Source: Octopus bimaculoides
Taxonomy: Eukaryota
Direction of reading: 5' to 3'
NCBI RefSeq assembly: GCF_001194135.2
Contig: NC_068984.1
Location: 132,701,446-132,758,925, forward strand
Length of the DNA: 57,480 bases
Part shown: positions 2,650 to 33,411 of the stretch, one piece after another
Layout of the letters: each line of letters starts with the position of its first letter
Numbering within the stretch: position 1 is the first letter of the stretch
Translations under genes and position numbers: made by a program
The notes under the pieces: generated by a model
The model's input: only the letters and a program-made list of their open reading frames with translations
Told to the model about the DNA's origin: nothing
Database searches by the model: none

Positions 2650-2692
2650 CCGCCATTTTCAATTCTTGGAATGCGGCTGTAATCACGTGACT
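2650..2692 (+). promoter_or_regulatory. Putative promoter of the AT-hook gene (YY1-like and E-box motifs)
   Basis: CCGCCATTTT (2650-2659, YY1 consensus CCGCCATNTT) and TCACGTGAC (2683-2691, USF/MiT-type E-box) in a locally CpG-containing stretch ahead of a GA-rich leader and a splice donor. Confidence 0.5.
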
Positions 2693-2699
2693 GCCAAGG

Positions 2700-5363: not shown

Positions 5364-5473
5364 ATATATATAGAGAGAGAGAGATGTATATGTATACATG
5401 CATATATATAGATGTATACATCTATATATATATATATACATGCATACATATATACACCCACACACATATACAT

Positions 5474-12450: not shown

Positions 12451-12667
12451 TGCCATTGCCAGTACCGCTGGATTGGCCCTCATGCCGGTGGCACGTAAAA
12501 AACACCCACTACACTCTTGGAGTGGTTGGCGTTAGGAAGGGCATCCAGCTGTAGAAACTCTGCCAGATCAGATTGGAGTCTGGTGTAGCCATCTGGTTCG
12601 CCAGTTCCCAGTCAAATCGTCCAACCCATGCTAGCATGGAAAGCGGGCGTTAAATGATGATGATGAT
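12451..12667 (+). mobile_element. RTE 3' end copy
   Basis: Ends CATGCTAGCATGGAAAGCGGGCGTTAAATGATGATGATGAT, then (AT)n. Confidence 0.9.
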
Positions 12668-12915
12668 ATATATAATTCTTATTCCAGTAAAATTGAAAGT
12701 GCTATTAAGTATAAAAAACACTTATTCTATTATTAAAAGGAATTTTGGCTCTTAATAAAACACTGTTATTTTTATGAATGGAATAGCAGCACTGGCTGAA
12801 TTTTCTTTAAACTGTACAACTTTAATTATTGCTGATATTATGACATTTTTCTCACATGGCAAAGTTATTCAGTTTTATTTCGTTTTCTTTTAAGTTTTAG
12901 TGTTTAGAATCCAGA

Positions 12916-12966
12916 ATGTCATCCCGAAATGCCAAAAGGGGCCGGAAGGACTCACCTAATTCTGAA
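12916..12966 (+). CDS. HMGA-like AT-hook protein, coding exon 1 (MSSRNAKRGRKDSPNSE)
   Basis: ATG at 12916 after a pyrimidine-rich acceptor region; open frame to GAA|GTAAGA; phase 0. Confidence 0.8.
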
Positions 12967-12975
12967 GTAAGAATT

Positions 12976-13006
<31 letters not shown>

Positions 13007-13040
13007 TATTTCTCATTGGACTTAGATTTTGATTTCATAT

Positions 13041-13270
13041 CCATCATAATTATTTAACATCCGTTTTCCTGCTGGCAGGGTTTGGATGGTTTGACAGGAG
13101 CTGACCAGACTCCAATTGTCTGTTGTGGCATGGTTTCTATGGCTGGATGCCCTTCCTAATGCCAACCACTTTACAAGGTGTGCTGGGTGTTTTTTATGTT
13201 CCACTGGCATGGGTGTGTTTACACAGCACCTGCACAAGTGCATTTTACGTGGTACTGGCACCTGTAAAGG
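13041..13270 (-). mobile_element. Diverged RTE-tail repeat
   Basis: CTATGGCTGGATGCCCTTCCTAATGCCAACCACTTTAC core, inverted relative to the 12451 copy. Confidence 0.75.
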
Positions 13271-13949
13271 ACAAGCCTGTATGTATGGATGACTGCAATT
13301 TTACTTCACTTGAGTTTGTCTTCTCAAGTACAGTAAATCAAAACTTCTGGTCCCTTGTCATTTCCTCAGTGGGGCCAGATAGGGATAATTGACCGAGTAG
13401 TTTGCTCATTCAACATTTTATGGGGTAAAGAAAAAACACAAATTTGCTCTACAATCCCTAACTGTAGTTTTAAAATATTCTTGGAAGGAATTGTAATCAT
13501 TGCCAGGAATGTAACACAAGTCACTCCAAAAACTTATTGAGAAATCTGATATTTTCCAAATATCTTAAAAATTAATTTTTACAAAAATTGATATACTCAT
13601 CTAACATTTACAGTAAGAGTGGTTCTTATTTCTTGTACAAATTTCCAAAAGTAGATATTTCCAGCCCTTACCAGTACATGGTGTGAAAGACCCTTAAGTT
13701 TTTATTTATTATACTGTGTTGAAAGCTTTGTGTTTCTGTTTTGCTGGATTGATTTAGTTGTTGGTTAGTTCAATGTCAGGCCTAATTCAGAAATCTGATC
13801 TATGGTCAAAAGCTTGCCTGCTATCTCCATCCATCCATCAGCCCAGAATGGTGTACTGAGGACTACTATAAAGAAAACTTTGGAGATTAACCATAGAAAA
13901 AAAACAAACTAATAACTGAACAGCAAACACAAATTGTGAAATTTTATCA

Positions 13950-14975
13950 AAACCAAGGAACAATAATCCTGATCCAATAAGCATATCATGGCATGAGAGT
14001 GTCTTCAAGGGAATCAATGATTAGATGTTTGATAGATTGTTTTGTGAAATGGCGTTCAATAAGCAACCTTCCACAAAGAGACAAGCCTCACTTGGTTAGG
14101 AATGAAGCCATAGTTGAGCTTGTAAAGGAAAGTTTCAAGGACATCAACTTGAGGCATTCTGGACACATTAGAGTCCTCTGGACTTTGCCCTGATGCATTT
14201 TTAAAATCATGAACATGTTTGCATTCAAGGATTAGCAAAGGGAACTCCTGAATTTATCCACAAGCTGATAATGTCAGATGAAGCACATTTTCATTTGAAT
14301 GGCTTCTTTATGAAAATAAAGCTGTGATATTTGGTGGTTCTGAAAATCTTAGTGTAATCCGTCAAAGGAAATTGCACCCAATTAAGTGTACAGTTTGGTA
14401 AGGGTTGATGATGGGAGAAGTGACTGAACTCTGTTTTGAAAACCACATTAAGAATCTTGTCACTTACAGGATATGAATATTGGTCTATGATAAAAAATTT
14501 CTTATTCCCAACAGTTCCAGAATAAACATGGCATAGGATGGAGTGCCAGCTTGCCTAGTAAATCTAACTGCTCAGTTAAATTTTTGAGAGATAAAATAAT
14601 TTCCTGCACTTACAATATAAGCTGGCCATTGTAGTATTCTCCAGATCTGAAGACTTCTGATTTCTTTGTAATGAGCTATCTCAGTGAAAAAATTTATGTT
14701 AACAAGCCTCAGACAGTCTAACAGCCGAAGAACAATATGTGGGCTGAAATCATCACTGGAGCCTGAAATGCTGAGAAGTATCATGGAAAGCACTTTAGAA
14801 AGAGCACATTTGTGTGATGTAGGAGAAATGGATGCCATATACAACGTGATTTTCATGCCTAGCATATATTTATTTCGTATACACTGTATATGATGCTATA
14901 ATATTGTAAATTTAAAACAAATAAAGGGGGTATTAAATATTGAACCCCCTTTGTGATTTTTGACACGTGTCTGGA
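13950..14975 (+). mobile_element. Degraded Tc1/mariner (maT/DD37D-like) transposase fossil
   Basis: SDEAHFHLNG (about 14274), WP..SPDL..SDFF, YVNKPQT and MESTLERAHLC segments; multiple frameshifts. Confidence 0.7.
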
Positions 14976-17439
14976 TGGCATATATAAATCTACTGGTCTC
15001 TATTATTTACGTAGATGATGTGTATCTAATGCGTTCACTTTTCAGTTTAAAGAAAATATTTTTGTGGTTGGGTGTAGATTTAGTATTTCTCGATATTTTT
15101 TATAATTGAGCTCTTTTTGTATTTTTGCAGATTGTTGCAAAAGAAATGAAACCAGAGGTAAATATTGTGAATATACTTTTAAGAATTGGCATGGAATATT
15201 ATGTTTACAGTCAGAAATAATATACATATATATATTTATTATGACTCTTTTGTGGCCCATGATGATGATAAAATATATTGACCATATATTTCACTTAGTT
15301 ACTGAATTTTGTACTTGGTATTTGTAATATGTTTTTTGCAAGAAATTATGAAAGCTTTGATTTAGATATGAACACTTTAAAACAAGAAATTGTGTATCAT
15401 AAAACCAAATTGCAGATTGGGATCAAAAGAGATAAATAGACTAGCAGGTTGAATGGTACTTTATTGATTTTACTGTACCATTCCTTTTGTTCATAACATT
15501 TGTATCCACACTGTTAACCATATCTGTGCTCCACTATGGGTTGTGTGTGGCATATTTTTTATTTGGTTTATGTAAACTATATGAATAATGGTGCACAAAG
15601 CAGTAGTGAATAAAATATATTTGTGTGAGGTTATATTTAATGTGTTCAAGTGTATTTGAACATAAGACCTTTCACTGCATAACTAATCCCAGGAGCAAAT
15701 TATCTTCCTAGACATGTGCAAAATGGTATCTTAGGCTGTCATCAGATTGTGGGATGCATGCATATCTGCATCTTTTTGCTTCAACTACAAAAACCAAATC
15801 TGTCATTCACAGCCTGTAAAGAATGAAATTATTCTTATTAAAACAATAAAGTACATAAAGCTTGGTCAAACCAGAATTACATAATGTTTCATGAAACAGT
15901 GTTATATAAAATATAACCATGTGAAATCTTATTTAACATGTCTGGGTGTATTTGGACATGAGAAGGCCTTTTGCTGTGGAATTAGCCCTTGGATAAAATT
16001 CTCCTCTTGGACATAGAGCTTTTAATTTATGATTGGCTTAATGATCTGGGTTTTGAGTGGTGCATTAATCTAAGCCATGTTTTGAATATCTATACTTTCA
16101 CTAGTATTACATTGGTACTTTTGGTATTTTATGCTGTTGTATGTGCAAATACATTGGCCCACTCCTCCACCTTGTGCATTAAGTATGTTGTGTAACAGTG
16201 CAAATATTGAGTAGTTTTTACACTCTGTGATTCCTGAATAATAATAAGAATATACCGATATTTTTATTGTCATTGACTATTCTTTCATTTACCAGTTTGA
16301 TACCTAGCTGTCTGATATTTGTATTAGCTCTTGGTACCAACCTGCCTATCTGCCCCTTGGTCTATGATGCAAACTTTCTTGTTTAAAGTGATCTTAACAT
16401 TTAATTTTAATGAAAATGTTAATTTATGTTCCAAACACCATCTTAATTATGGCAAAGTTATTTTATTAAATTCTTCACTATTTTCAAAATTAACTGAAAC
16501 AAAGGCAGTGTATTTTAACAGGAATAAGGTAACAAAAGGGTTCATATTTCAATTAAGACATTTTGTTAAAAAATTTATTATACAAAACAAAATATATTAC
16601 ACTGGGTAACCTTTGTCTTTTAAGATGCTAATTGAAAAGTTAGTAATACCTTGCCTCCTTTTTGAGTTGTTTTGAAGTTAATTGAATTGTGTAACCAATT
16701 TGTTGGAAATATAGTGATGTGTGCTTTAACCCATTGCCTGTCCAAAGCATTTTCATAAGCTTCTCCTAAATGGCCATGCTTGTTTTCAAGTTTTTAGCTA
16801 GGCCTTGCTTCATACATTCTGACTAATATAAAGCTTTTCTTTCATAAGTGCCAAGTTACTCTGGTGGTTGAAAAAAATTTGGAAAATGTATCATATATGA
16901 TGCCAGGGAGAAATGTCTTGTGTATTACATGTGATACATAGGACTGGGAAAGGATTAACCTTTTAAAATGTACAAATTTATCCACACAACAGTCTTACTC
17001 CTGGCAGAATGAAGGAAAATAGAACAAGGGAAGTGTCTCAACAATAATGCAAAGTTGAAAATGTGTAGCACTTAATGTGTATGAATGAAAAGCATTGGAA
17101 AATAAATGACAGAAGTGAAGATAGATTGTGACTGATGGAGCTCAAAGATTCTACACAGCACAAGTTGAACACCTTAATAATAATAATCTTGAGCAGAGAA
17201 AGCATTACAAAGTGATCTCACAACTCAACACAAGCTCAATCTGTTATTTAACTTGTGAATCTAGTATTGGCCTACATAGTTATATGTAGGTCTACAGAAG
17301 TTGAATTTGGTGGGCAGTCATCCTCAACATGCAGGTTTATCATCACCAACAACTTACTGGTATAACACGAGGGAGTGGAGTTTAACAAAATTGGTGGTGC
17401 TAGTATTCATGTGATTTAATTTCTGTTCTTCTGTTTTAG

Positions 17440-17475
17440 GCTGAGTCCAATGATGCTACAGATAACAATACTGAG
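17440..17475 (+). CDS. AT-hook protein coding exon 2 (AESNDATDNNTE)
   Basis: TTCTTCTGTTTTAG|GCT...GAG|GTATTT; 36 nt, phase 0/0. Confidence 0.75.
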
Positions 17476-17826
17476 GTATTTTCTTTCTCAACTATAACTT
17501 TTATTAATATCTCATTTAAAATTTAAGCCATAATTCTCTTGATTATAAATCAAATGATCACTGTTTCTATGGCTTCAAAAAGTCCACAGATAAAGAGGGA
17601 AATGGGTCTATATGTAAAACTGAACTTCGGGAAACAAGTTTGTTGAGTAAATTGAAATTAAGATGAAGTAGCATTATTTAGTTTTTGTAAACCACTTATG
17701 CAAGAAGAGTTTGCATTAATTAAAAGTTTTCTTGATTGCTATATGTTTACTTTCCATATGAATGTTATTATCCCTAGATAATTTTCCTCTGTCATTGTTA
17801 TGTTCATGTGTTTTATTGTGCATGCA

Positions 17827-19266
17827 CAGTGGTGGGTACAGCTAACCAAAAAGTTAGCTTTGCTAACCATTAATCTAACTAAAAAAGTTAGCCTTGCAAA
17901 CGCTAAAAAAATTAACAGAAGGTAGCACTAACTTATAACTGCTAACTTTTATCATATGAATTTAGCTTCAGTCTGGTTTGCTCTAAAACTCTTAAAGACA
18001 GACCAAGAGAGCTGAAATTTTCATGTTGGAACTTAGATGTAGAGCTTTCCAAATAGGTATAGCATGCGAAGATCAAATGATGATCAAGATGTATGTAAAT
18101 AATTAAATGAACAAATGAAATTAAGCATTAGTTTTTTCAGTCATCATACACTTTATTTATTGTACAAAAAGTATTAAATCAAAAAGGTATAGTATAGCAT
18201 AGGTATCATGCCAAAATCAGATGACAATCAAGGTGTACTACTCTGGCTGGGTCTTCTCCATCATCTCGACATGATGCTGGTTGCCATTCATAAACATCAG
18301 CCTCTCAAAGTTACCTTTGGCCCTCAAAATATTTTTGCCTGTAGAGAACAGGTGCTCAACTGCAGCACTGGATGGGATGGCTGTGTTATACTTGGTGCAG
18401 CACTGGACGGGATGGCTATGTTATACTTGGTGAACAGGTCACTCAAGACCTGCTCACCCAAAAAGGCAACTTCAGTCAGGACTTTCCTCAAGACTGCTTC
18501 CAGCCAGGTCTTCACCAAATTCTGTGCCTTAAACTTCAGTGACCTGTGGCTCCTGTTCTCCCGAAACCAAGTGCTGTTGCTGAAGAAATCATCTTTCTCA
18601 TCCTCGCTGCTCTCCTCATTGGTCTCCATTAGAGCAGTCTCCATGGCATTCATTACTTTCCTAACCTGGCTGTTATACTGCTCCAGCCAGATCAGGCGAA
18701 ACTTATGGTAGAAGGTAGTGGTCAGCTGGCACTCCAGGTCTTCTAGGAGGAGTCCAAACCGTTTTGTGATGCCTGCCAGTATCGCATCTACCAGAGGAAC
18801 TTGTTTGAATTTGGCCTCCTTCAGCGACCTCTGCCTCATCTACAGCCTTTGCAGACTCCTCAACAGGCTCTTCATCTTCAAGCTGAACAACGATGGCTTC
18901 ACCTTCCATAACGATAAGCCAATAATGTACACTGCTATCGCTGACACTGTAAGATTGTCTGTAATGTGACAACATAAGTGAATACAACTCAACTGCAGAA
19001 TTACACAACGTTGCTCAGCTAGCTGCTGTGTCAACCAATCACGTCTTGTCATGTGTACATGTAGTCAGCCAATAATGTGCCTGATGGATGCTTCAAGACA
19101 CGCCCACAACAAACAGGAACAAACGTATGAATTTTGTTTGCGGAACTAAATTTAACGGGAGCTAATTGGTCTGTTAACGGTTTCTAAAGTTAGTGGAAAC
19201 ACTAATCTACTAAAGGAAAAGTTAGCTTTACTAATTAGCTGATTAGCAGAATCGTGCCCATTACTG
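17827..19266 (-). mobile_element. hAT DNA transposon, internally deleted, with intact ends
   Basis: Perfect 8-bp TSD TGCATGCA (17819-17826 and 19267-19274); TIRs CAGTGGTGGGTAC / CAGTAATGGGCAC; minus-strand transposase C-terminus PLVDAILAGITKRF...KYNTAIPSSAAVEHLFSTGK (hAT dimerisation motif). Confidence 0.92.
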
Positions 19267-19550
19267 TGCATGCATATAGATATTCTATTAGTACAGATCT
19301 AGCAGAGATGTTTGAAGACTATACTTTGTTGAGATCTAATTAAATTAGGAAGGCATAGAGTAATTCTTAGAGGATAACATGAAATAAGTTGAGCAAAAGT
19401 TTGACAGAAACATATAACAAATAGGTGATATAAGAAAGAAACAAAAGTCATGGAGAGGGGTGGAGGAATTTCAGTGTGAAAAAAATTCATTAATTGTATT
19501 CTGTTCAATATGTCTTTCAACAGTTTTGAATTTTTATTTATTGTTTTCAG

Positions 19551-19607
19551 GTGAAAGTTAAGAAAGGCCCTGGTAGACCTAGGAAACTAGAATCTGAAAA
19601 GAAGAAG
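19551..19607 (+). CDS. AT-hook protein coding exon 3 (VKVKKGPGRPRKLESEKKK; hook 1)
   Basis: TTGTTTTCAG|GTG...AAG|GTATGT; 57 nt; GRPRK motif. Confidence 0.92.
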
Positions 19608-19910
19608 GTATGTACATATATATATATATTATATAGTTACTCTTGCCATGGCAACCTATTAGTGGAACTGAACCCCAAACCACATAGTTTGCAATTATTT
19701 TAGATATTGCTTTGTTTTTTTCACAAAGCTTAGGCTATCAAGATGATGTTTAAGTATAATGTAATGAAATATACACGAGATGAATGATTGCAGAATTTGA
19801 ATTTTAAAGACAGATTGATTACAAGTATTTAATGAATATATTAGTAAATATTTTGCTGTATTAACTTATATGAATACATAAATAGTAATCTTCTGTATTC
19901 TCTTTTTCAG

Positions 19911-19958
19911 TGGATTCCAACAGGCCGTTCAAGAGGAAGGCCAAGAGTTCATCCAGTT
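19911..19958 (+). CDS. AT-hook protein coding exon 4 (WIPTGRSRGRPRVHPV; hook 2)
   Basis: TCTTTTTCAG|TGG...GTT|GTAAGT; 48 nt; RGRPR motif. Confidence 0.92.
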
Positions 19959-20824
19959 GTAAGTTATATTACAACTTGTAATTTCTGCTTGGGCATATCT
20001 TCCATAATATTTGTGCTAATTATTGTAGTTACTATTTTTGAAATGTGGAAAACCTATTTATTAAGCTGTATAATGCTTAACTGAGTACATTTTTATAAAT
20101 TTAGTGTCTTTAGGCATATGATGTAGATATATCTGTGATGGAACTTTTTTGTTTTTAAATCTACTCTAATTACAGGTAAATACAGGTAAATTCATTGAAA
20201 TGTAAGTTTATTAAAATTTTGTTTAAACATCACCTTTTAGAATGAGTTCATCATCTTCATCATTTTTACATCAGTATCCACTTTCCATGTTGGCATGGGT
20301 TAGGAAGGATATCACAACTCAAGCCAGTTCTTATTCAGAATTACTGCTGTCTTAGACAGATTGAAAGGCCACATCTTGCTTGTATGTCATTTTTGACTTG
20401 GTTTCTTTAGCTGGATGCTCCTTCTATCATCAACCACTTTACAGTGTACTTGGTGTATTTTGTCATGATGCCAAAACTAGGGTCATTGTCATCTCCTCAA
20501 CTAGACTAAAGGGTTCTCTTGACTTATATTGTCTCTACTCACTGGTTACTTTACGTCATTTGGGTGCATTTTATTATGGCATCAGCCTTTGTGAAGTGGC
20601 CTTATACTCAAGTAGAGTCCTTGCTACTGTAGGATGTGTTTTGCCCAAGGTAATCTGATTGAGTAAAACAATAAACAGATCTGTGACAGAACAACTAAGA
20701 TAAAGGGAGCAGGAGTATGATGGTTGGGGGAGAGAAATAAAGGTGGACAATGGTAAGAAGTGAGTGATGGATATCTGTAACAAGTGGTCTGGAGGAGAAG
20801 GAGTGATTACTGGAAGTATAGGAA

Positions 20825-20980
20825 TGGCAGTGAGCTGGTACAATCATTACCATGCCGGGCAAAGTGCTTAGCAGTATTTCATTTGTCTTTCTGTTATGAG
20901 GTCAACTTTGCCTTTCATCCTTTTGGAGTCAATAAAATAAGTACCAGTTGAGAACTGGGGTCAATGTAATCAACTTTACT
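20825..20980 (+). mobile_element. SINE family N (Nin-domain-like core)
   Basis: GGCAGTGAGCTGG head and GTCAACTTTGCCTTTCATCCTTTTGGAGTCAATAAAATAAGTACCAGT core. Confidence 0.7.
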
Positions 20981-22581
20981 CCTGGATATGAGTACAAAAA
21001 TCTGCCTCCCTTTGCCAAACCTTGTTGAGCTGTTGTGGCAGTGTAGGCTCATCAGACCAGCATGATCTCAAGCTATTCTCTGGTGGAGAGAACATGCTGA
21101 GGCCCTCGTCTTGCAGTGGACTGAACACGAGCAAATCAATCCAATCCAGTTGAAAGGGTGATGGTTAGAGTGTAACAGGTACCATAGTTCTTACACATAG
21201 GTTTGTGATGGGTGGATGAGGGGAGAGGATTTAATATATGCAAATCTAGTACCATCTCTCATTACATAAGTAACGTGAATCGAAGGTAAGTCATAGAAAT
21301 GAATTAGCTAGTATTCATATAGGTTAAGTAGATGAATTGTTGCATTTTCAAGGGAGCTTGAGCGTGTAAAACAGGCTACATGTAAAGGTAAAATAACTTT
21401 TTAAAAAAGTTTGTTTTATAAAATGAAAATTGATATGATACTTTTTTATAGCAATTTGTGAACACTAGTGTTGTTGGTTTCATGTTTCCAATTGGACAAT
21501 CCCTGATTTACTATGTATTTTTGATGGAGTGTGAAACCTAATGCAAGGAACTTTACCTGTAAAGTATTTTTTTTTGTTTTCTTGTTGGTGTTTATTTCCT
21601 ACACCAATATAAATCTATAAAGTGTGAATATATATTTGTGTGTGTATATACCGATATACATACACATACGAGTTTTCACACAGTTTCCCTCTACCAAATT
21701 CTACTTGCAAGTTATTATTGAACATGAGGCTAAGGTAAAAGATACTTGCCCAGTACTGTGTATTGGAATTGAACTTTGAGTCCATGTAGTTACAAAGCAA
21801 GCTTTTTAATCATGCAGTCATGCCAATCAAAGTTTCATGGAAAAATGTAGAATGTCCTCCATTCATAATGCATTTCTTGCAGAATATGTACAGCAGAAAG
21901 TTGTTTCAGTTGACTGTCCATCAGGTGTTTTCTTTTTCTGCTGTAAGCATTTGCAGAATACAACTGGGAAATCATTATTCTCTGCACACAATCTTGCAAT
22001 CATTGAATTTGTTTCCCTTTCCCCTCTTGTTTTATAGAGGTTGGCTGAATTTAAAGTCATATCCTTCTTTCAGACTTTTTCCTTTCTCACAACAATTGTC
22101 TCTACACCTCTCTTTATTTTTTAATTTTTCACAAATGATTTATTCTCAGTTGAACTGCAACATCAGCTTGAAACTGCAAATGGTTGTATCACTTTTGAGC
22201 TTCTCTTTATTCAGTATATGATAAATAATCATTGAAAATATTCATATTTACTTTATATTAAACCAAGTATTACCACTACTTACTATCTTTCAACCAAGTT
22301 ACAGCTCCTCATCTGATTCAACCAATCTATACAGTCTGTTACCATTATAATTGATATTTACGAATGGTGTACCATTTTCATTCATATGTCATGCACATGT
22401 AGATAGAGAATGAATTTACTTCTTATATCTGTGCAGTCAGTAGCAAATTTCCTTTCTGCTGTTAGATTAACCTTTTTATTTTTAAAACTGTGCCATGTGT
22501 ATGTTGTCGCAGTTAAATCCTCTACATGCCTGACTGAACTGTGGAACTGATCAAAACTTAATATTCAGTTTCAGTTATGGT

Positions 22582-23175
22582 CATCATCATCATCGTTTAA
22601 CGTCCGCTTTCCATGCTAGCATGGGTTGGACGATTTGACTGAGGACTGGTGAAACCGGATGGCAACACCAGGCTCCAGTCTGATTTGGCAGAGTTTCTAC
22701 AGCTGGATGCCCTTCCTAACGCCAACCACTCAGTGTAGTGGGTGCTTTTACGTGTCACCCGCACGAAAACGGCCACGCTCGAAATGGTGTCTTTTATGTG
22801 CCACCCGCACAAGCCAGTCCAGGGGCACTGGCAACGATCTCGCTCGAAANNNNNNNNNNNNNNNNNNNNNNNNNNNNNNNNNNNNNNNNNNNNNNNNNNN
22901 NNNNNNNNNNNNNNNTACTTGGCTTGCCGGGTCTTCTCACGCACAGCACATTTCCAAAGGTCTCGGTCAGTAGTCATCGCCTCGGTGAGGCCCAATGTAC
23001 GAAGGTCTTGCCTCACCACCTCAGCCCAGGTCTTCCTGGGCCTACCTCTTCCACGGGTTCCCTCAACTGTTAGGGTGTGGCACTTTTTCACGCAGCTATC
23101 CTCCTCCATTCTCACCACATGTCCATACCAGCGCAATCGTCTCTCTTGCACGCCACAACTGATGCTTCTAATGTT
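22582..23175 (-). mobile_element. 5'-truncated RTE LINE (young; contains an N gap)
   Basis: MQERRLRWYGHVVRMEEDSCVKKCHTLTVEGTRGRGRPRKTW...KTRQAK, then 3' UTR and (GAT)n tail. Confidence 0.92.
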
Positions 23176-23523
23176 CAGTTAATAATTTCAAGACCACATC
23201 ATACCCTTGGTCACACTGACAACAAGCACAATTGTTTCTTTTCCCCTCTGCAGTGAAAGTTAAAACCACAGCAGCACCTAACTTTTGCATCAGAGATTTT
23301 ATTCTTTTACATCCCATTTTCTAGACTCTCTTGGCATGTAGTAACCAGCCTTTATGTCTGGCATTCCTTTTGTCCCAGACTTAATTCTCCATTGTACAGA
23401 GTCCAGAAGAGTCTTGTATAATTAATGGGTTGTAACACTTTCTTTCCATACTGGGTGCACTATTTTTGAAATGATAAACTTTTTATTCATTTAGTTATTT
23501 GTCCCTTTTCTTTACTTTCTTAG

Positions 23524-23571
23524 GATTATAACAAGGTAAAGAAACCTAGAGGAAGACCACGTATAAAGCCT
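23524..23571 (+). CDS. AT-hook protein coding exon 5 (DYNKVKKPRGRPRIKP; hook 3)
   Basis: TTTACTTTCTTAG|GAT...CCT|GTAAGT; 48 nt. Confidence 0.92.
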
Positions 23572-24248
23572 GTAAGTTGTGCTTTCTTAAAAAAATTTCA
23601 GATGTTTCAATTCTTCCAGGATTTAGGAATTATGTAGTTTTTTCTATAAAGATTTTGCTGTAGGATTATGTTTGGTATGCTAAGTATTGTAGTATAAATT
23701 GGTTCTTTTAACTCTTTCATCACTATATCTCTAATTAAAATAAATGTCTAATAGTAATTAATGAAAGTGGTTTTGCTTCAATAACTCCTGTCAGTGTTCA
23801 TATTTTCAGAAGTATGCCATTAGGCACATATCCTCCTCAGGGAAATTGGATGGAAATAAAGGAAATGGTTTTAAACAAAATAGCTTTCTATTTCTAATCA
23901 AATGTTCCATATTAGAATCAGAAATATATTTTAGGAAGGAATTTGAAAATTTGTTTATAACTGGGGATGACAAAAGTAAAACAGTGTGCCGTTCTAAAAT
24001 TTAATCACAAATAACACAGTACTGCTAGCACCAGATTTTAGTTCGTTATGACTACTATTGCCAAAGTATCCATATTTTGTTCTTTTGAAGTTGAGTTTGG
24101 TACAAACAATCATCATTGAATGTCCACCTTCCATGCTGGCATAGATTGGACAGTTTGACAGGATCTGATGGACCCAAGAATTGCATTATGCTCCAGTGTC
24201 TGCTTTAGCATGGTTTCCTAATGCCAACCACTTCAATGTGTGTAATTA

Positions 24249-24623
24249 CTCTTTTACTTGTTTCAGTCATTTGACTGTGGCCATGCTGGAGCACCGCCTT
24301 TAGTCGAACAAATCGACCCCAAGACTTATTCTTTGTAAGCCTGGTACTTATTCTATCGGTCTCTTTTGCTGAACCGCTAAGTTACGGGCATGTAAACACA
24401 CCAGCATCGGTTGTCAAGCAATGTTGGGGGGGACAAACACAGACACATACATATATTTATATATATATATATACGACAGGCTTCTTCCAGTTTCCGTCTG
24501 CCAAATCCACTCACAAGGCTTTGGTCAGCCCGAGGCTATAGTACAAGATGCCTTGCAGTGGGACTGAACCCGGAACCATGTGGTTGGTAAGCAAGCTACT
24601 TACCACACATCCACTCCTACGCC
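24249..24623 (-). mobile_element. SINE family B, near full length
   Basis: Reverse-complement match to the 7596 copy from head to 3' tail. Confidence 0.85.
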
Positions 24624-24963
24624 TGGTGCTTTTTTAAATTTTTTTTACCACTAGCACTAGTGAGGTCACCATGTAGCTTGAAAGATTATGAACCCTGGGT
24701 GGGGTGTAGGAACTTTATTCGAGAATAAGGATTAGATAGAGGTAAAGTGTGAGAAAAAGGGCCTGAGCAGAATATGTTTCTTGCTGGAGGACACATTCTG
24801 TCAGTTTTATGTTGGGTCAGAGCATATAAAATGTCATTTATATATCCAGTTTGTAGATTAAGTCTAAATAGTGTTCAAGTTGTCTTTATTATTGTATTTG
24901 TTGTTTTTTTCATTATTAGTTAATTTGTTATACATTACTTATGGGATTTATTTGTTTTTCCAG

Positions 24964-25011
24964 ATAGTGCATAAAGAAAAAAGACCAAGGGGCAGACCAC
25001 GCAAAAATCTT
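24964..25011 (+). CDS. AT-hook protein coding exon 6 (IVHKEKRPRGRPRKNL; hook 4)
   Basis: TTGTTTTTCCAG|ATA...CTT|GTAAGT; 48 nt. Confidence 0.92.
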
Positions 25012-25673
25012 GTAAGTCTATTTTCTCTTTAGATTAAGATTGACTTGAATGTTAGTGTTTAGTCACACTCAACCCCCTTTTAATACAGCAAATCTATGAT
25101 TAAAGGGGCACTAGCTATGACAAAACTAATTTTTTATTCAGACCTAGTGATTCTGCAATATTGTCCCCTTTTTGTGCTGTTAAAAGTAATGCTTGCCTAT
25201 TCACATTGTCTTGAATTAATCATGCATTATCTCGTGGCTTTGATGAGGAAACTGTTAATTTTTAGAATGATATTGTAGGATTATTGTAAGATCCTAAATC
25301 AGGTCATCATCATCATCGTTTAATGTCTGCTTTCCATGGTAGCATGGGTTGGACGATTTGACTGAGGAAAGGGTAAGTCGATNNNNNNNNNNNNNNNNNN
25401 NNNNNNNNNNAGTGCTCAACTGGTACTTATTTTATTGCCCCCTCTAAAGGATGAAAGGCAAAGTCAACACACAATGGCTTCTCTGTTTCCATCTACCAAA
25501 TGCACACACAAGGCTTTTGTCAGCCTGGGGCTATAGAAAAAAACACACTTGCCCAAAGTGCCATGTAGTGGGTCTGAACCCAGAGTGGTTAGAAAGTAAA
25601 CTTAACCATACAGCCACACCTGATCAAATACATTCATTCAAATGTTATGTAATCATTTTTCTTTCTTTTTTAG

Positions 25674-25703
25674 GCTGAAGATGGTGAAGAGAAGCAGAAA
25701 AAG
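25674..25703 (+). CDS. AT-hook protein coding exon 7 (AEDGEEKQKK)
   Basis: CTTTCTTTTTTAG|GCT...AAG|GTATTG; 30 nt, phase 0/0. Confidence 0.85.
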
Positions 25704-25864
25704 GTATTGAAGTTTCCCTTTTAACCTCTTTCAGTTTCTTTTTGGGAAATTTTCTTTTTTATGTTGAGGGAGGTGTTACAATCACAATTTGGTGTTTGTC
25801 ATTTTGCCATTACTATTGAAGGCCAGATTAGATAAGATTAATGTGAATGTATGATTTGTTTTAA

Positions 25865-26084
25865 ACCATTCGTTACTGTATTTATTTTGAGATGCTCTCT
25901 GTTTCTTTCAATTACTTTAAATATAACAAAAAATTTAGTAAAATAACTTAGTTATCATTCAGCTATTGTTAAGCACATAAATTGTGACTAAGGTTTGGTG
26001 GAAGATTTTAATTCAAAACTTATGAAAACAAGACATTTGCACTCAGAGCCAGAGCCGGTTTCAGCCGGGTTAGTAACGAAAGGG
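25865..26084. mobile_element. TTAA-flanked MITE (piggyBac-type), family 1
   Basis: TTAA-ACCATTCGTTAC ... GTAACGAAAGGG-TTAA; a related degenerate copy lies at about 16320-16610. Confidence 0.7.
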
Positions 26085-26197
26085 TTAAATGTCTTTTTGG
26101 TACTTGATTACGTATAAGATAGAGCACTGAATTTCATAGTTTTGGAGAAGTGTTGTTCTAATTTATATATCCTGTGTTAACCATTTCTTTCTCTCAG

Positions 26198-26245
26198 GTA
26201 ACTGGGCGTGGACAGAAGAAACCGGGAAGGCCCAAGAAACAATAA
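26198..26245 (+). CDS. AT-hook protein coding exon 8 (VTGRGQKKPGRPKKQ*; hook 5)
   Basis: TTTCTCTCAG|GTA...CAA TAA|GTAAGA; 48 nt; stop codon abuts the donor. Confidence 0.88.
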   Translation, partial: VTGRGQKKPGRPKKQ

Positions 26246-26657
26246 GTAAGACATTTCAGTAATTTTATTAAAACACTATCATACATTGAACTTTTCGGTT
26301 ATTTCAAAGTGACATGTTTGGTCAATTCTCCTGTATTTCTCTCACGCTTTTTTATAATTAAAAAAAAGATATACATGTTTCAGGTTTTGTAAGAGTGACT
26401 CTGAAATGAGTTTTGAATGCAGTAAGTAAAAAAAATTAATAAATAGAAATCAAGTGTGAATCATAGTGGACTTTGAACTGGATTTTCTGTTTTCAAGTGT
26501 GTAAACAATATTTGGCAAAATATTTCCATCAATCCATCTATTTTCTCCACCCACTATTTATGGGAAGCAACCATCAATTCTTGGTTAATCCCAAAATTAA
26601 GATTTACGATTTACTGGTTTAAATCCTTTCTACAAAGACTTATTGATGGCAATTTAA

Positions 26658-26878
26658 CCATTTAGCAATCAGATTACTCTGTTAAACACAATGCTTATTT
26701 ATTCACATTGTTTTGTATTAATCATGCATTATCTCATAGCTTTGAGGTTTCAAAGAGGTGATTGTTTATTTTTAGAATGACATTGTAGGGTAGGTGAGAG
26801 AGCCTGGATCTGGCCAGTTTCAATGTCGAAACAGGTAGAATATTTGGGCCAGATATGGCTGGTTTAAATGTTAAAGGG
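26658..26878. mobile_element. TTAA-flanked MITE, family 2
   Basis: TTAA-CCATTTAGCA ... TGTTAAAGGG-TTAA; inverted copy at 54853-55076 and partial copy at about 25150-25300. Confidence 0.7.
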
Positions 26879-27334
26879 TTAAGGAGCCATCATCTTTTAA
26901 CCTCCAGCTTCCATGCTGGCAAAGACCAGATAATTTGACACGATCTGACAGGTCCAAGGGCTACTTCATGCTTCAATATCTGCTTTGGCTTATGTGACTT
27001 TTAATTTGCAGAAAATTCAAACTCTTTTTCTCATAGTGATAAAAAAACCTTCCTTCCATGAACATTTGATATACAACTTCAGTTATTAATTAGATCAGAT
27101 TACTAAAGATTTATCTTCATATAATGATTTCAAAAGGTAATTAACAAGAGAACATGAGACTTTTTCCTCGTGGTGATTCTGCATGATAGAAGAATCATAA
27201 ATTAGTTGCTAAAATGTAATGTTAAGAAATGGATGAGTGAGTTAAATAATAATTTGTTTATGACTATGTTGTCTCCTTCCATTGTACTGAGAATTCATAA
27301 AGTAAAATGTTTGTGTTTTTGTTTTTGTTTTCAG

Positions 27335-27460
27335 GATCCCTTTAAATACATCTGTCTGAATAATGCTAGGAGCAGTATGTTGGCATCAAAAGACTTCTCA
27401 TCTTCATCTATATCACCTAATAGTCTTACATCACCTAAGTCGGGTCCAAGAATGGACTGA
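27335..27460 (+). CDS. Terminal exon of the AT-hook gene: 3' UTR, or in-frame alternative C-terminus (DPFKYICLNNARSSMLASKDFSSSSISPNSLTSPKSGPRMD*)
   Basis: Strong acceptor TTTTTGTTTTTGTTTTCAG| at 27334; 41 open codons in phase 0. Confidence 0.45.
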   Translation, partial: DPFKYICLNNARSSMLASKDFSSSSISPNSLTSPKSGPRMD

Positions 27461-29249
27461 AGCCTTTTTTAAAAACTTGGCTGTGTGCAAGTGACTGTGT
27501 GTGTATGCATGCAATTTGACTGTTTTCAATTCCAGTTCATATATAAGAATCTTTTATTCAAAATATGCACTATTTTCATCCTTTTAGCTAAATTTAAAAA
27601 AAAAAAAAAATCAGATAAACTCTGCTGGCATAGCTCTGGTATAGCATCATCCTCATCATCATCAGATACACTGTTTGCTGATCAGAGTTTATGCTGCATA
27701 ACTTAGAATGCAACAGATATCTGAGGTAATTAGTTTGTTAATCACTGGCATGTTATTGTTCATCTGCTTAGAACAAACAGTAACATAAAATGTGAAAACT
27801 AATGCACTGCCATCAACCCTTCCCATTAGAAAATCTAGTATTTTATTTTCCCTCTTGATTTGTTTTTATAGATAACCTGTCCATTTTGATTGATTTATAT
27901 AATAAATTAATTCTTANNNNNNNNNNNNNNNNNNNNNNNNNNNNNNNNNNNNNNNNNNNNNNNNNNNNNNNNNNNNNNNNNNNNNNNNNNNNNNNNNNNN
28001 NNNNNNNNNNNNNNNNNNNNNNNNNNNNNNNNNNNNNNNNNNNNNNNNNNNNNNNNNNNNNNNNNNNNNNNNNNNNNNNNNNNNNNNNNNNNNNNNNNNN
28101 NNNNNNNNNNNNNNNNNNNNNNNNNNNNNNNNNNNNNNNNNNNNNNNNNNNNNNNNNNNNNNNNNNNNNNNNNNNNNNNNNNNNNNNNNNNNNNNNNNNN
28201 NNNNNNNNNNNNNNNNNNNNNNNNNNNNNNNNNNNNNNNNNNNNNNNNNNNNNNNNNNNNNNNNNNNNNNNNNNNNNNNNNNNNNNNNNNNNNNNNNNNN
28301 NNNNNNNNNNNNNNNNNNNNNNNNNNNNNNNNNNNNNNNNNNNNNNNNNNNNNNNNNNNNNNNNNNNNNNNNNNNNNNNNNNNNNNNNNNNNNNNNNNNN
28401 NNNNNNNNNNNNNNNNNNNNNNNNNNNNNNNNNNNNNNNNNNNNNNNNNNNNNNNNNNNNNNNNNNNNNNNNNNNNNNNNNNNNNNNNNNNNNNNNNNNN
28501 NNNNNNNNNNNNNNNNNNNNNNNNNNNNNNNNNNNNNNNNNNNNNNNNNNNNNNNNNNNNNNNNNNNNNNNNNNNNNNNNNNNNNNNNNNNNNNNNNNNN
28601 NNNNNNNNNNNNNNNNNNNNNNNNNNNNNNNNNNNNNNNNNNNNNNNNNNNNNNNNNNNNNNNNNNNNNNNNNNNNNNNNNNNNNNNNNNNNNNNNNNNN
28701 NNNNNNNNNNNNNNNNNNNNNNNNNNNNNNNNNNNNNNNNNNNNNNNNNNCAATTACTTATGCATACGCTTTATTTTCACATAGTAGTGTCTCCATTTTA
28801 ATTTCAAATTTGCTTGCAGTATTCCTTATTTCAATTTTTAACTTCCTCTCAATTTTGTAATGCTTAACTTTGCTGCTTTTTTTTAAAGTCAGTGCAAGCA
28901 ATAGGAAGTGATTTATTGCAGTTAGACAATATTTAAGCAGTGACTCTCATTAATTTTTTTTTTAAATAATAAAGACAAAAAAATACCTTAGAACCAGTTT
29001 CTCACTGGATTTTAATTGTAAGATATAGTTTTAATTTTGTTTTGCTTTTAAAGTCCATTGCCAAACTATTTTTAATTTCAAGAATGTCTTGTTTATCAAG
29101 CTGTACAGGAAATCAATGTTATTTTTATTTGATACAAGGGTTTTTAGATTGTATTCATTTTCAAGATTTCATTAAAAAAAATTAGATTTCTACAAACAGC
29201 AGTATTTTGTTGTTGCTTGTGTTTAATTGATAATTTTTAACTAGTTAAT

Positions 29250-29450
29250 GATACATCATTTTAATGTCTGCTTTTCCATGCTTGCATGGCTCAGACAAAA
29301 TTTACTGAGGTAGATTTTCTATGGCTGGATGCTCTTCCTGTTGCCAACCTTCGACTGTTTCCAAGCAGCGTAATATTTCCCCCATACCCAGATATGTTCT
29401 TGCAGCAACACCTCATTCGCAACTACCACATAATATTAAGACAAGGATAG
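29250..29450 (-). mobile_element. SINE-like family D
   Basis: ATCATTTTAATGTCTGCTTTTCCATGCTTGCATGG...TGTTTCCAAGCAGCGTAATATTTCCCC. Confidence 0.75.
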
Positions 29451-29499
29451 ACGGGGTGGGTTCACATGTGTGCATGCGCACACACACACACACAAACAC

Positions 29500-30390
29500 G
29501 TGATAGGTTTCTTTCAGTTTCTTATTTCTTTACTGCCCACAAGGGGCTAAACACAGAGGGGACAAACAAGGACAGACAAAGGGATTTAGTCGATTAAATC
29601 GTCCCAGTGTGTAACTGGTGCTTCATTTATCGACCTAACGTTTCTGCCAACTCGCCGCTTTTCTTTCAGTTTCTGTCTACCAAGTCCATTCACAAAGCTT
29701 TGGCTGGCCTTGGGCTTTGCTCAATATGCCACACAATGGGACTGAAACCAGAACCATGTAGTTGAGAAGTAAATTTCTTACCACACAGCCATGCCTGTAC
29801 CTACAAGTGTGTTAATGTTGAACAAAACAAAAGGATTTCGCTTGCAAGTAAAATTGTTAAACAAAGGTATCTTTCAACATGGCAGCAAAGAGTTTATACT
29901 TCATTATCCAGTGTAATTACTGAAATCATATTGTCAATTTTTCAGATTGAACAGCAAGTTATTCACTTTGCAACTTTGTGGTTTTAGGGTCAGTCCGACC
30001 GCATGGCACCTTCAGTAAGTGTCTCCTGCTATAGTTCCAGACCAAATAATTCTTTGAGTAAATGTAGTAGATGGAAATTTCCTAGCCATATGGTTCCGGG
30101 TACAGTTTCACTGCTTGGCACTTTGGGCAAGTGTCCTGTACTATAGCTTTGGGCCTACCAGGTCCTTGTGAGTGAATTTGTTAGATAAAAACTGAAAGAA
30201 GCCTCTGTGTGTGTGTATCTATCCTCCACCACCATCCTACAACTGGTGTTGGTGAATTTGTGTCCCCATAACTTAGTGGTTCAGCAAAAGAGACTAAGTT
30301 TACAAAAATATAAGTGCTGATGTTGATTCACTCACAGTGCCACAGCATGGCCACAGTCTAATGACTGAAACAAATAAAAAGACAGAAAAA
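29500..30390. mobile_element. Cluster of SINE family B fragments (both orientations)
   Basis: Minus-strand head/core at about 29660-29800 and plus-strand fragments at about 30060-30390. Confidence 0.65.
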
Positions 30391-31224
30391 GATAGGCATT
30401 GTAAGATGTGGGTATGATTGTATGATTTCGGAGATTGCTTTGTAACCATGTTGTTAGGTGCTTCATCCTTCTGTGTAGCACCCTCAGCAAATGTCTTCAA
30501 CTATAGCCTCAGGGTGACCAAATTTCTTGAGTGAAATTTGATTTGCAGAAACTGTACAAAAGCCTGTTGTTTAAACATTCATACATATATTTTGGTGTGT
30601 TTCTGCACATCTTCACTGGGTGAGTTAAAATGGTGACTGTTTACATCTATGATTATTACATCCCATAGATTGGTGGTTTCAGCATATATAAAAACCGGTG
30701 AAATAAAAGGAAAATTTTATTTTAAAAGCAAGTATTCGTTGGCAACAGGAAGAGAGCATTCATCTGTAAAATGTTACTTCATTAAACTCACATTCAAACC
30801 ATTTGCCAAAATTTAACCCTTTCAAAGCCATATTGATGATGAAATACACAGGTTGTGATTTTCAATTCAATGAAGAATTTGGTATGAAGTTTATCTTAAA
30901 ACTAGGGCTTGAAATTTAAAGGTAGGATATTTAACATTCGTGTACATAAACAACAGAATGCATACTGAGAAAAGGGCGAACTATAAAAAGAATCACATGT
31001 AGCATGCAAATGACTAGAGAAAACTGACATGGAGGAGGAGGGCCGTTAGATAAAAGAGTGCAAATGGAAGAATCATGTAGATTACATGAGAAGTGGTGAA
31101 AGTTAATCTCCAGAGGCTGAACTTCACTGAGATGGAGAAAGGACTACAAGTAGCATGATGTGCTAGAAGAGACCTATCAAAGTACAACATGCAATCATGG
31201 AAAGGTGGACTCGATATATATATT

Positions 31225-31435
31225 GATTTTAAATTTTGGCACAAGGCCAGCAATTTCAGGAGGAGCTAAGTTGATTACATCAACGCCAGTGCTCAACTGG
31301 TACTTATTTTATGGACCCCAAAAAGATGAAGGGCAAAGTTGACCTTGGTGGAATTTGAAATTAGAATGTAAAGAAGGATGAAATGCCACTGAGCTTTTTT
31401 GCTTGGTGTGCTAATGATGCTACCAGCTCACTGCT
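31225..31435 (-). mobile_element. SINE family N
   Basis: TTTTGGCACAAGGCCAGCAATT...CTGGTACTTATTTTAT.GACCCC.AAAGATGAAGGGCAAAGTTGACC...CCAGCTCACTGC. Confidence 0.8.
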
Positions 31436-31735
31436 TCAGTGGACTTGAAATATTGATAATTTCTATCAAGAAGTCACACAATACACCACAGCAGTTTATA
31501 GTACATCAGTCAGCCTACTCAACCAGGATCCATGTATAATTTTGTTAAAATTTATGTGAAATAAATTGCTTATACACCTACAATACACAAAATGTTTTAC
31601 TATTTTTATACAATTCCTCATAATATTAGGAATAATACAAAAGGATATTTTTTTTTATATGCATCGAATGTCTATGGATGTCCAGTAGAGTAAAATAGGA
31701 ATCTAAGAGGTCCATAGGAAAAAAATGTATATATC

Positions 31736-31975
31736 TCTATATATATAAAACAGAGTTTGTGTATGTTCCTTATGGATTCGGAAACTGAGTTGCCAATTTT
31801 GATGTGTGAGGTATCAAAAGATTCAGTAATCGTTTGGCTGCCAATTAAAGTGTTTTTTGTACAACTTTTTTTTTTTTTTTACTACAAAAATAACCTCAAA
31901 AACAAGGTTGGGTCCCACAATTTTGAGATCTTTAGCTAAAGGAGGCAACGCTGCCTGAACAATCTTTGTCTTAGA
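31736..31975 (+). mobile_element. Possible non-autonomous Helitron (degenerate)
   Basis: TCTATATATATAAAAC...TGTATGTTCCTTATGGATTCGGAAACTG start resembles 4425; small GGCA-ACGC-TGCC hairpin near the end; no clean CTAG. Confidence 0.4.
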
Positions 31976-33411
31976 GCATAACAAGAAAATGTTTAAAATA
32001 CATGGAGTTTTACCAGGACATGAAGCTTCGAAGCTTAGTATTATTTAGTAGATAATCTTTTGATGTGAAGTATATTTGTGTTTTGTTTAGCCCAGAGTTG
32101 TCTCTGATGTAGCAGACCTATCTTTTTTTTTTTTTATTCTTGCATCGTGTTCCACTATTGGTACACAGTATAAATTTTAAAAAACTGATATTTTAATGAA
32201 CTCAGTCATTATTATACATGATTTATGTTTTAGAAATGAAGGATAATAACTAGATTTTGCAAATTTATAACATATTCCTGTTTTATTATCAAAACTTATC
32301 AATAATAATAAAGTAAAATAAATAATAAGAAAAAACAACTGAACAAGATGCTGGTGAGGCTTAATGGCTAAACTCAGAGATGTGTTTAAAGTGTTAAGAA
32401 CCATGTTAAAATTATTAACTTATATCATAGGAACATTAGGCAGTTATATGGGATTGCAACAGTAAACTTCCAATGCATGTAAGGATTGAACCAACAAGAA
32501 TTGGCAGAATGAAGTTCTGGTGGCCAAACACTTGTTTGTAGATGAATTGCTGCCAAAACTATTCCTTTGCATCCCACTGAATGCAAGAGTACTACCTGTT
32601 TCATCAAAGCAACAAGGCCACCAGACTGGTAATGCATTCTTCATTATCTTCAAACAAACCATTCTAAAGCTTGGTCTTTAATTGCTCATTCTCATCTGAC
32701 TCCACAGAGATATAACCCAATCAGTGTATTCCATTCCCTCATAGAAGAACAACTTGAGCCAGCCAATTACTGTCCTGCCACACTCTTCATATGTAAAAAG
32801 TGAGGGAAACAGCTCCAATATCTTAAAACTCTCTCTTCCTTTTTAAAGACCACCAATATGGCTTTCATAAAACCAGGTCTACTGTAGACCTCTCTTGTGT
32901 CACCAGTGACTCACTCTCAAAAAATTTGGTGAATAATGCTGTTTTGTCTTTAACATTATCAATGCTTGGCAGTGAAATTCCTGTCAGTTGTGCTTTCATG
33001 GGTTCCATCCATCTCTCAACTCTTGAATCAATGGTTTCCTGTCAGATCATACTACTGCAATGGACTGATGTAGTTCTCTCTGACCCACATTCTGTCAACT
33101 TGAGCATGCTCTAGACTCCGGTTTCTTCCTCCTGTACATTCAAGATTTACTTGCCATCACCTTCTGCAACACACACTAAACTTTCACTCAGCCTAAACCT
33201 AAAAGAATAAAATGGAGGAGAGTAGCAAGAAAAACAGCCTTATCTGTTGGTGTGTTGAGGACTCGGTAACAATATTTTGGAAAAGAAATAAAAGTAATAA
33301 AAAAAATAACTTAATTTAGTAGTTTGTCCAATTAACTATTTGAAAATAAATGCCATCCACTTGGTGGCAGTGTAATATCCCTAACGTGTATTTATCTTTT
33401 TAGCACTCCAA

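Follow-up and report, generated by a model that had tools for sequence, protein, structure and literature searches.

The window examined here is a stretch of 57,480 nucleotides (nt) of Octopus bimaculoides DNA (NC_068984.1, positions 132,701,446 to 132,758,925), identical base for base to GCA_001194135.2 CM046604.1 over 33,330 nt, and it contains a real, expressed and already annotated gene for a small multi-AT-hook protein. An initial annotation, made from the letters of the window, had described this gene as an HMGA-like gene of eight exons at 12916-26245 with a 121-amino acid product. Its structure can now be read from a spliced complementary DNA (cDNA) contig of the Logan assembly of SRR32601320 (L001, 1166 nt), which is 100% identical to the window over 11 blocks and for which each of the 10 junctions has exactly one GT-AG solution. 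The transcript has at least 11 exons and spans at least 25 kb. The exons are as follows (UTR, untranslated region; the isoforms of the O. sinensis orthologue mentioned in the list are described below):

2871-2918, + strand: exon 1, 5'UTR (contig bases 1-48; the 5' end is a minimum, as the contig begins here; donor GT at 2919, acceptor AG before 12895)
12895-12966, + strand: exon 2, first coding exon, MSSRNAKRGRKDSPNSE (ATG at 12916, in-frame TAG 18 nt upstream; cDNA)
15131-15157, + strand: exon 3, 27 nt, phase 0, IVAKEMKPE (L001 with GT-AG, XP_014783749.1, O. sinensis isoforms)
17440-17475, + strand: exon 4, 36 nt, acidic/polar, AESNDATDNNTE (translation, splice sites, cDNA)
19551-19607, + strand: exon 5, 57 nt, hook A, KKGPGRPRK, with a PGRP variant core (translation, splice sites, cDNA, motif scan)
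19911-19958, + strand: exon 6, 48 nt, hook B, WIPTGRSRGRPRVHPV (translation, splice sites, cDNA, motif scan)
23524-23571, + strand: exon 7, 48 nt, hook C, DYNKVKKPRGRPRIKP (translation, splice sites, cDNA; duplicated in O. sinensis)
24964-25011, + strand: exon 8, 48 nt, hook D, IVHKEKRPRGRPRKNL (translation, splice sites, cDNA; skipped in O. sinensis model isoform X4)
25674-25703, + strand: exon 9, 30 nt, acidic mini-exon AEDGEEKQKK (translation, splice sites, cDNA)
26198-26245, + strand: exon 10, 48 nt, last coding exon, hook E, KKPGRPKKQ, a PGRP variant (last 3 nt are the TAA stop; cDNA)
27335-27916, + strand: exon 11, 3'UTR (contig bases 463-1044; continues into a gap of 834 N at 27917-28750)

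All eight exons of the initial annotation translate from the forward strand into the peptides given for them and are bounded by canonical AG and GT, and sequenced RNA supports every one of their junctions. The product, however, is 130 rather than 121 amino acids long, because a 27-nt exon between the first two proposed exons had been missed; the 121-residue sequence is absent from about 15 billion proteins. A protein search with that sequence led to P0001, a 108-amino acid open reading frame (ORF) from the Logan assembly with 100% identity, and L001 is the contig that carries it. The coding sequence of 393 nt gives a protein identical to RefSeq XP_014783749.1 (P0009), and the gene is already in RefSeq for three Octopus species; the earlier statement that it is invisible holds for the prokaryote-style ORF list from which it was made, but not for public annotation. 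Similarly, the coding start and stop were placed correctly, but the gene is larger than its proposed range at both ends, with a further 5'UTR exon, a first coding exon that begins upstream of the ATG, and a 3'UTR reaching at least to the gap.

Each of the eight exons first proposed has GT(A/R) downstream and, upstream, AG with a polypyrimidine tract. The lengths of the internal coding exons are all divisible by three (27, 36, 57, 48, 48, 48, and 30 nt) and the cDNA junctions place every intron between coding exons in phase 0. The count of four 48-nt hook exons also stands, with the proviso that one of the four includes the stop codon. Around the 5'UTR exon, which has TATA-like motifs upstream, the observed/expected CpG ratio is about 1.0 (2601-3200), compared with 0.35 for the whole window. 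At the other end the stop codon lies flush against a splice donor (TAA/GTAAGA, an arrangement also present in O. sinensis) and is followed by a 3'UTR intron of 1089 nt (26246-27334; cDNA). With the stop codon this near to the last junction, the transcript should escape nonsense-mediated decay. The last 122 nt of the contig are not in the window. The first 30 of these have their match in the O. sinensis locus (L002), starting at about 31326, immediately past the collinear block. Since this is where collinearity predicts them to be, the cDNA supplies part of the 3'UTR that is unread in gap 27917-28750.

Hook motifs and the encoded protein

Hook-like motifs are strongly enriched in the window. 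Its six frames contain seven GRP[RK] motifs compared to 0.63 expected from shuffles, and five RGRP motifs compared to 0.33. The five GRP[RK] sites on the forward strand of the gene fall exactly in the five hook exons, one in each, as had been proposed. The full RGRPR core is present in only three of them, hooks B (GRSRGRPRV), C (KKPRGRPRI), and D (KRPRGRPRK), while hooks A (KKGPGRPRK) and E (KKPGRPKK) have a PGRP core. No cryptic hook exons were found on the forward strand of the introns; the other GRGRP frames are minus-strand retrotransposon tails.

The octopus protein is basic and of low complexity, with its acidic patches internal and a C-terminus of KKPGRPKKQ, as initially described. In the forward strand from 12967 to 35000, there is no open frame with at least eight D/E in 15 residues that could represent an acidic tail exon, the 834-N gap (27917-28750) being the unreadable part of that interval, and the O. 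sinensis isoforms share the basic end. The protein is expected to be intrinsically disordered, based on an AlphaFold2 prediction (four-sequence alignment) with a predicted template modelling score of 0.14, a mean predicted local distance difference test value of 62.9, and no secondary structure besides one helical turn of three residues.

The O. sinensis orthologue (LOC115210677) is annotated as "high mobility group protein HMGI-C", a name also given to the O. vulgaris orthologue. The exon structure of the O. sinensis locus, which is gap-free, is collinear with that of the window. The coding sequences of O. bimaculoides and O. sinensis are 93.9% identical, with six synonymous and 18 non-synonymous differences, and their introns are 88-93% identical. 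The coding changes cluster in the last three coding exons, and all GRP cores are the same in both species. That the cores are invariant while the rest of the chain changes fast indicates constraint on the hooks and not on the whole chain.

We consider it very likely that the locus encodes a 130-residue, disordered, nuclear architectural protein of the HMGA/multi-AT-hook kind. Judging from its motifs, the disordered chain would bind AT-rich DNA multivalently in the minor groove. Several hooks on one flexible chain would make this binding cooperative and able to bend or bridge DNA, and such bending or bridging would shape chromatin and enhancer architecture. Since the octopus protein is without the autoinhibitory acidic tail of HMGA, its DNA binding is predicted to be constitutive.

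A number of observations weigh against this assignment. The only Pfam match is AT_hook at 13.1 bits, best on hook D and below the cut-off of 17.4, although a sub-threshold score is usual for this 13-residue model. Hooks A and E may bind weakly because their core is PGRP and not RGRP. No solved structure was matched in a sequence search of the PDB. For the pair O. bimaculoides and O. sinensis, the ratio of non-synonymous to synonymous substitution rates (dN/dS) comes to about 0.85, calculated from small counts, which signifies weak overall constraint. With respect to HMGA in particular, the octopus protein is without the acidic, phosphorylatable C-terminal tail and without the GRPKGSKNK signature of the second hook; it also differs from HMGA2 in that no W stands directly after the third hook, its sole W being eight residues past hook A. 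In addition, a BLASTP comparison to human HMGA2 (with an approximate query sequence) gave 28 bits, limited to the hooks.

HMGA membership and relatives

For the human counterpart, the exon sizes are 87, 51, and 33 nt. In human HMGA1 and HMGA2 the AT-hooks are on separate exons (PMC7353061). In HMGA2, each of the three hooks is encoded within exons 1-3; a linker of 11 residues comes from exon 4 and the acidic tail from exon 5 (PMC11291832, which cites Chau et al. 1995). The octopus gene is similarly arranged, each hook being on its own exon with short linker exons between them, all in frame. One hook per small exon, offered as a distinctive trait of the octopus gene, is therefore a known design of this type of gene and not a novelty. 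Moreover, it is found in a second mollusc, the bivalve Tegillarca, whose genomic locus (L007) has predicted exons with one hook each and junctions at codon boundaries. One AT-hook per symmetric exon is thus an architecture common to molluscs and vertebrates.

The octopus protein resembles HMGA in other respects too: it is small, basic, and disordered (130 amino acids, compared with about 100-130 for vertebrate HMGA), and it has three full RGRPR cores, plus two PGRP[RK] variants, compared with the three hooks of HMGA. Further differences are found at the 3' end, where a 3'UTR intron comes after the octopus stop codon and where, unlike in HMGA2, there are no let-7 seed sites (6-mer to 8-mer) in the 3'UTR as read, the scan having covered the 3'UTR of L001, window 27335-32000, and the counterpart from O. 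sinensis.

HMGA-like genes have been reported throughout animals, with RGRPKGSKNK as the signature of hook 2 and a W right after hook 3 as an HMGA2-type signature (PMC7013770). To identify relatives we used a profile built from octopus and two transcript-derived sequences. Its matches included two cephalopod-like Logan transcripts (P0003 and P0014), in both of which the A-B-C hook triplet is doubled, and a protein of the bivalve Sinanodonta with about 12 hooks (P0015, ACJMK2_016001) that is labelled "Chromosomal protein D1-like". Matches were also found in the gastropod Patella (P0017, SNE40_013904), Tegillarca (P0042, KUTeg_022132), and the annelid Lamellibrachia (P0019, LSAT2_031651). The lophotrochozoan set has in common an N-terminal M-x-SR-x-KRGRKD, the hook order A-B-C, and a terminal segment KKVT(S/G)RG. 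Its hook types are A, KRGRGRPRKPxxxKK; B, W/Y-x-x-TGRPRGRPR-x-x-P; and C, xNxPKxPRGRPR. The A-type hook followed by KKK/W is kept in the relatives, and the B-type motif TGRPRGRPR in those that are cephalopod-like, bivalve, or annelid. Because A, B, and C represent separate hook types kept across phyla, the origin of these hooks is ancient. Hook number, in comparison, ranges from 5 to about 12, so that the five-hook structure is not standard across molluscs. The octopus protein is the shortest of the set and has no tail, while an acidic C-terminal tail is present in a Logan transcript (P0005) and in the Tegillarca and Lamellibrachia proteins. The acidic mini-exon has a counterpart, DGENGRSKS, in P0014 that is absent from P0003.

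The profile also matched canonical HMGA, namely HMGI-C of the sea anemone Exaiptasia (P0104), which has both the hook 2 signature and the W after hook 3, and a protein of the sea urchin Diadema (P0117) with a hook 2 of the type RGRPKGSLNK. A Xenopus multi-AT-hook protein with the C-terminus VRSIEINQ (P0054), one of the XHMG-AT-hook proteins, was retrieved with an E-value of 2.5e-5, the shared residues being the hook cores.

HMGA orthology of the octopus gene is, from these comparisons, plausible but unproven. The main alternative is that the gene is not an HMGA orthologue but belongs to a separate multi-AT-hook lineage that arose independently in lophotrochozoans and is of the D1 or XHMG-AT-hook type, with its likeness to HMGA arising via the short hook motif, and we give this a little less than an even chance. 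Consistent with such a lineage, the similarity to cnidarian HMGI-C is confined to the hooks, as it is for HMGA2, and the octopus protein has neither the tail nor the second-hook signature nor an RKW after hook 3, though the sea urchin and sea anemone HMGA keep several of these features. The label of the Sinanodonta relative points the same way, and the neighbouring genes, MRPL11 and a NAA30-like gene, differ from what we take to be the neighbours of human HMGA1 and HMGA2. On the other hand, some of the relatives (P0005, P0042, and P0019) are small and have an acidic C-terminal tail, the allotment of a single hook to each phase-0 exon agrees with HMGA genes, the first hook of the relatives, KRGRGRPRKP, is of the HMGA hook-1 type, and NCBI names the orthologue HMGI-C.

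Three other known systems can be compared. Drosophila D1, a protein of about 355 amino acids with about 10 hooks, is like the octopus protein in being multi-AT-hook, tail-less, and disordered, although no specific sequence relationship between them is shown here; D1 suggests that a plausible role for the octopus protein is to bind and bundle AT-rich satellite DNA. The Xenopus proteins XHMG-AT-hook1-3 are tail-less and have six to eight hooks, a number ascribed to internal exon duplication in combination with differential splicing at a single locus (PMC3723657, PMC7013770). The octopus gene is similar in having more than three hooks and no tail, and in that exon duplication adds a sixth hook in O. 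sinensis. The Xenopus proteins differ from it in their length of 298-327 amino acids and long non-hook spacers, and in being without the conserved A-B-C hook order and a KKVTGRG terminal exon. A relationship between the octopus and Xenopus proteins beyond the hook motif is unproven. LEDGF/PSIP1 has AT-hook-like motifs, while the 130-residue octopus protein, for which Pfam gives the weak AT_hook match only, is without a PWWP or integrase-binding domain. In RefSeq the O. bimaculoides protein is called "lens epithelium-derived growth factor(-like)", a misleading automated mislabel.

The octopus gene is an uncharacterised member of the known HMGA/multi-AT-hook kind and reveals neither a protein nor a mechanism of a new kind. 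Its model was already public, and the tail-less multi-hook proteins of Xenopus precede both ideas put forward initially for the octopus gene, namely exon duplication and splicing. What is gained is a gene model, verified by a transcript, for a lophotrochozoan family of the HMGA-like kind that is so far uncharacterised; no paper that treats cephalopods and HMGA together was among the top-ranked results of a literature search.

Changes in hook number within Octopus

The modular exon design is an inherited property of this type of gene, one that permits hook number to change by exon duplication; exon skipping may also alter it, as is seen in model isoforms only. Serial duplication had been suggested by the equal length of the hook exons, and this part of the proposal is borne out in O. 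sinensis rather than in the window itself. Among the hook exons of the window the best pair, C and D, has 29 of 48 identical nucleotides (17 of 33 outside the core), and no pair of their 150-nt flanks exceeds the shuffle maximum, including the downstream flanks of A and C (z = 4.7), which are the sole pair to stand clearly above shuffles. Duplication among the O. bimaculoides hook exons, as judged from these comparisons, would be ancient at best.

In O. sinensis there is an extra hook exon, DMVKKSRGRPRIKP, of 42 nt with good splice sites (L002 27860-27901), that together with several hundred bases of flank duplicates the region of the DHNK (hook C) exon at 97.2% and 94.7% identity. O. bimaculoides has one copy, and its identity to each of the two in O. 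sinensis is 92-93%. As the two O. sinensis copies are more alike than either is to that of O. bimaculoides, the duplication most likely post-dates the split of the species. Exon duplication is shown directly by this young duplicate and by the doubled triplet of P0003 and P0014. The O. sinensis event, caught very recently after it happened, offers a textbook-style example of motif valency evolving by exon duplication.

The duplicated O. sinensis segment (L002 26238-28015) is interrupted by about 1.27 kb of inserted sequence (26485-27758), and the extra exon is 6 nt shorter than its 48-nt parent, in frame all the same. The O. vulgaris model CAI9722082.1 includes the extra exon; its last two coding exons are in a shifted frame (…GNWAWKEETRKAQERIRSL) that continues into the 3'UTR exon, which looks like a model error.

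The RefSeq models of the O. sinensis orthologue, which all finish in the same basic exon, are as follows:

Isoform X1: 144 amino acids, six hooks
Isoform X2: 130 amino acids, five hooks
Isoform X3: 122 amino acids, alternative start
Isoform X4: 114 amino acids, four hooks, without the MVHK exon and without the extra exon

It had been proposed that any exon could be skipped without a frameshift and that hook number and spacing could be tuned by splicing. In its strongest form this would make regulated skipping the point of the design, with octopus tissues containing isoforms that differ in hook number or spacing and a DNA-binding valency set by splicing. The symmetric, phase-0 internal coding exons would allow it, and isoforms X1, X2, and X4 differ by whole hook exons, while the differential splicing invoked for the six to eight hooks of XHMG-AT-hook isoforms (PMC3723657) provides a precedent. 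However, exon duplication would by itself be expected to yield symmetric exons, and their symmetry does not imply regulation. The isoforms of O. sinensis come from computational modelling, the sole O. bimaculoides transcript on record contains every exon, and RefSeq gives one isoform for this species. Furthermore, none of nine single-exon-skip products (the 121-residue sequence and eight others) was found by exact look-up in the approximately 15 billion proteins. The acidic mini-exon that distinguishes P0014 from P0003 could be taken as another instance of skipping, but these transcripts differ at many residues, which indicates different species and not isoforms. We therefore regard regulated skipping as somewhat unlikely. 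We would also tend to doubt, and consider rather unlikely, the broader proposition that hook valency is under active adjustment in octopods, through both a recent sixth hook in the O. vulgaris/sinensis lineage (by SINE-flanked exon duplication; SINE, short interspersed element) and tissue- or stage-specific isoforms with four, five, and six hooks. If true, the gene would provide a tail-less architectural factor of chromatin, tunable by splicing, for a genome that is very rich in AT and in repeats.

Since the extra O. sinensis exon lies in an interval that is interrupted in the window, the gaps there require consideration:

22850-22915, no strand: assembly gap within intron 19959-23523, inside an insertion of about 600 nt
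25383-25410, no strand: assembly gap within intron 25012-25673, with flanks that map to L002 25612 and 28615

Each gap falls within an intron across which the cDNA is spliced in frame (19958 joined to 23524, and 25011 to 25674); as all introns are in phase 0, the continuity of the frame is independent of the length of the gaps. The first gap was considered as a hiding place for an exon and rejected because it lies in a lineage-specific transposon insertion. Window positions 21196-22581 and 23180-24247 map to adjacent positions in O. sinensis (L002 23840 and 23848), so the approximately 600 nt between them are an O. bimaculoides-specific insertion in which no exon is expected. This insertion consists of a SINE-like repeat and a minus-strand fragment with a retrotransposon-type tail, RGRGRPRKTWAEVVRQDL.

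The second gap could conceal a sixth O. bimaculoides hook exon, in which case the count of five hooks would be an assembly artefact. The matching 3-kb interval of O. sinensis (L002 25612-28615) contains the extra 42-nt hook exon along with two SINE copies, which would be able to collapse an assembly. We nevertheless consider a concealed exon very unlikely, based on the identities given above, which place the duplication after the species split, and on the direct joining of 25011 to 25674 in the O. bimaculoides cDNA. In addition, the sequence to the left of the gap breaks off about 50 nt inside a SINE, the unread remainder of which suffices as an explanation; on comparison with O. sinensis, this remainder is probably all that the gap hides. 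One SINE-like copy is at the left edge of this gap, and two flank the duplicated O. sinensis segment.

Finally, there is next to no likelihood that the pattern is due to chance or a dead gene, with hook-like frames that are fortuitous or transposon-derived, since, despite the GRGRPRK in minus-strand retrotransposon tail fragments (23038-23046 and 730-738) and the high dN/dS, this reading is refuted by a fully spliced cDNA with an intact ORF by the retention of ORF, splice sites, and hook cores in O. sinensis, and by homologues across molluscs and annelids, and is further opposed by motif counts about 10-fold over shuffles.

Neighbouring genes and repeats

The neighbours named in the initial annotation, MRPL11 and NAA30, are both nearby. 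MRPL11 is downstream on the forward strand, with a gene call from 35085 and a last exon (37895-38179) that matches Pfam Ribosomal_L11. On the reverse strand at 52377-52670 is an exon of a GNAT acetyltransferase of the NAA30 type (Pfam Acetyltransf_1, 24.1 bits). The part of the MRPL11 last exon that encodes the C-terminus (…GIKVVHSLDVEEYTAFLEERHAFVKAEE…) recurs in near-identical form, with one codon fewer, at 41359-41634 on the forward strand, 3.2 kb downstream; this second copy looks like a local duplication or pseudo-exon. Just downstream of MRPL11, a 72-amino acid open frame (38594-38809, + strand) resembles the C-terminus of a mariner/Tc1-type transposase (…PCSPDLTPLDFFLRGHVK…), a motif reading for which Pfam gave no match.

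The introns of the AT-hook gene contain SINE-like repeats and transposon fragments. The SINE-like repeat, of about 180-300 nt, is present in at least 10 copies in the window, and these show 78-90% identity to copies of which the O. sinensis locus has at least eight. Repeat comparison placed the copies, which are in both orientations, as follows:

24-337, SINE-like copy
1513-1772, SINE-like copy
5082-5367, SINE-like copy
12456-12673, SINE-like copy
22578-22810, SINE-like copy
39947-40219, SINE-like copy
45942-46141, SINE-like copy
50589-50900, SINE-like copy
53488-53801, SINE-like copy
57173-57354, SINE-like copy

No tRNA-like part was detected in this repeat by ARAGORN, and scanning the window for Rfam families and tRNAs gave no hit. 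Fragments of a retrotransposon ORF tail (…VEGTRGRGRPRKTWAEVVRQDL…) are at 22918-23055 (- strand), 721-924 (- strand), and 45616-45654 (+ strand). Their GRGRPRK frame mimics an AT-hook and thus yields false positives in any hook scan; the label is a motif reading, as Pfam gave no match for the piece at 721-924. In intron 17476-19550, a 171-amino acid ORF and an adjacent 60-amino acid ORF (18241-18839, - strand) have C-terminal motifs like those of hAT transposases (…KYNTAIPSSAAVEHLFS…), again as a motif reading with no Pfam match.

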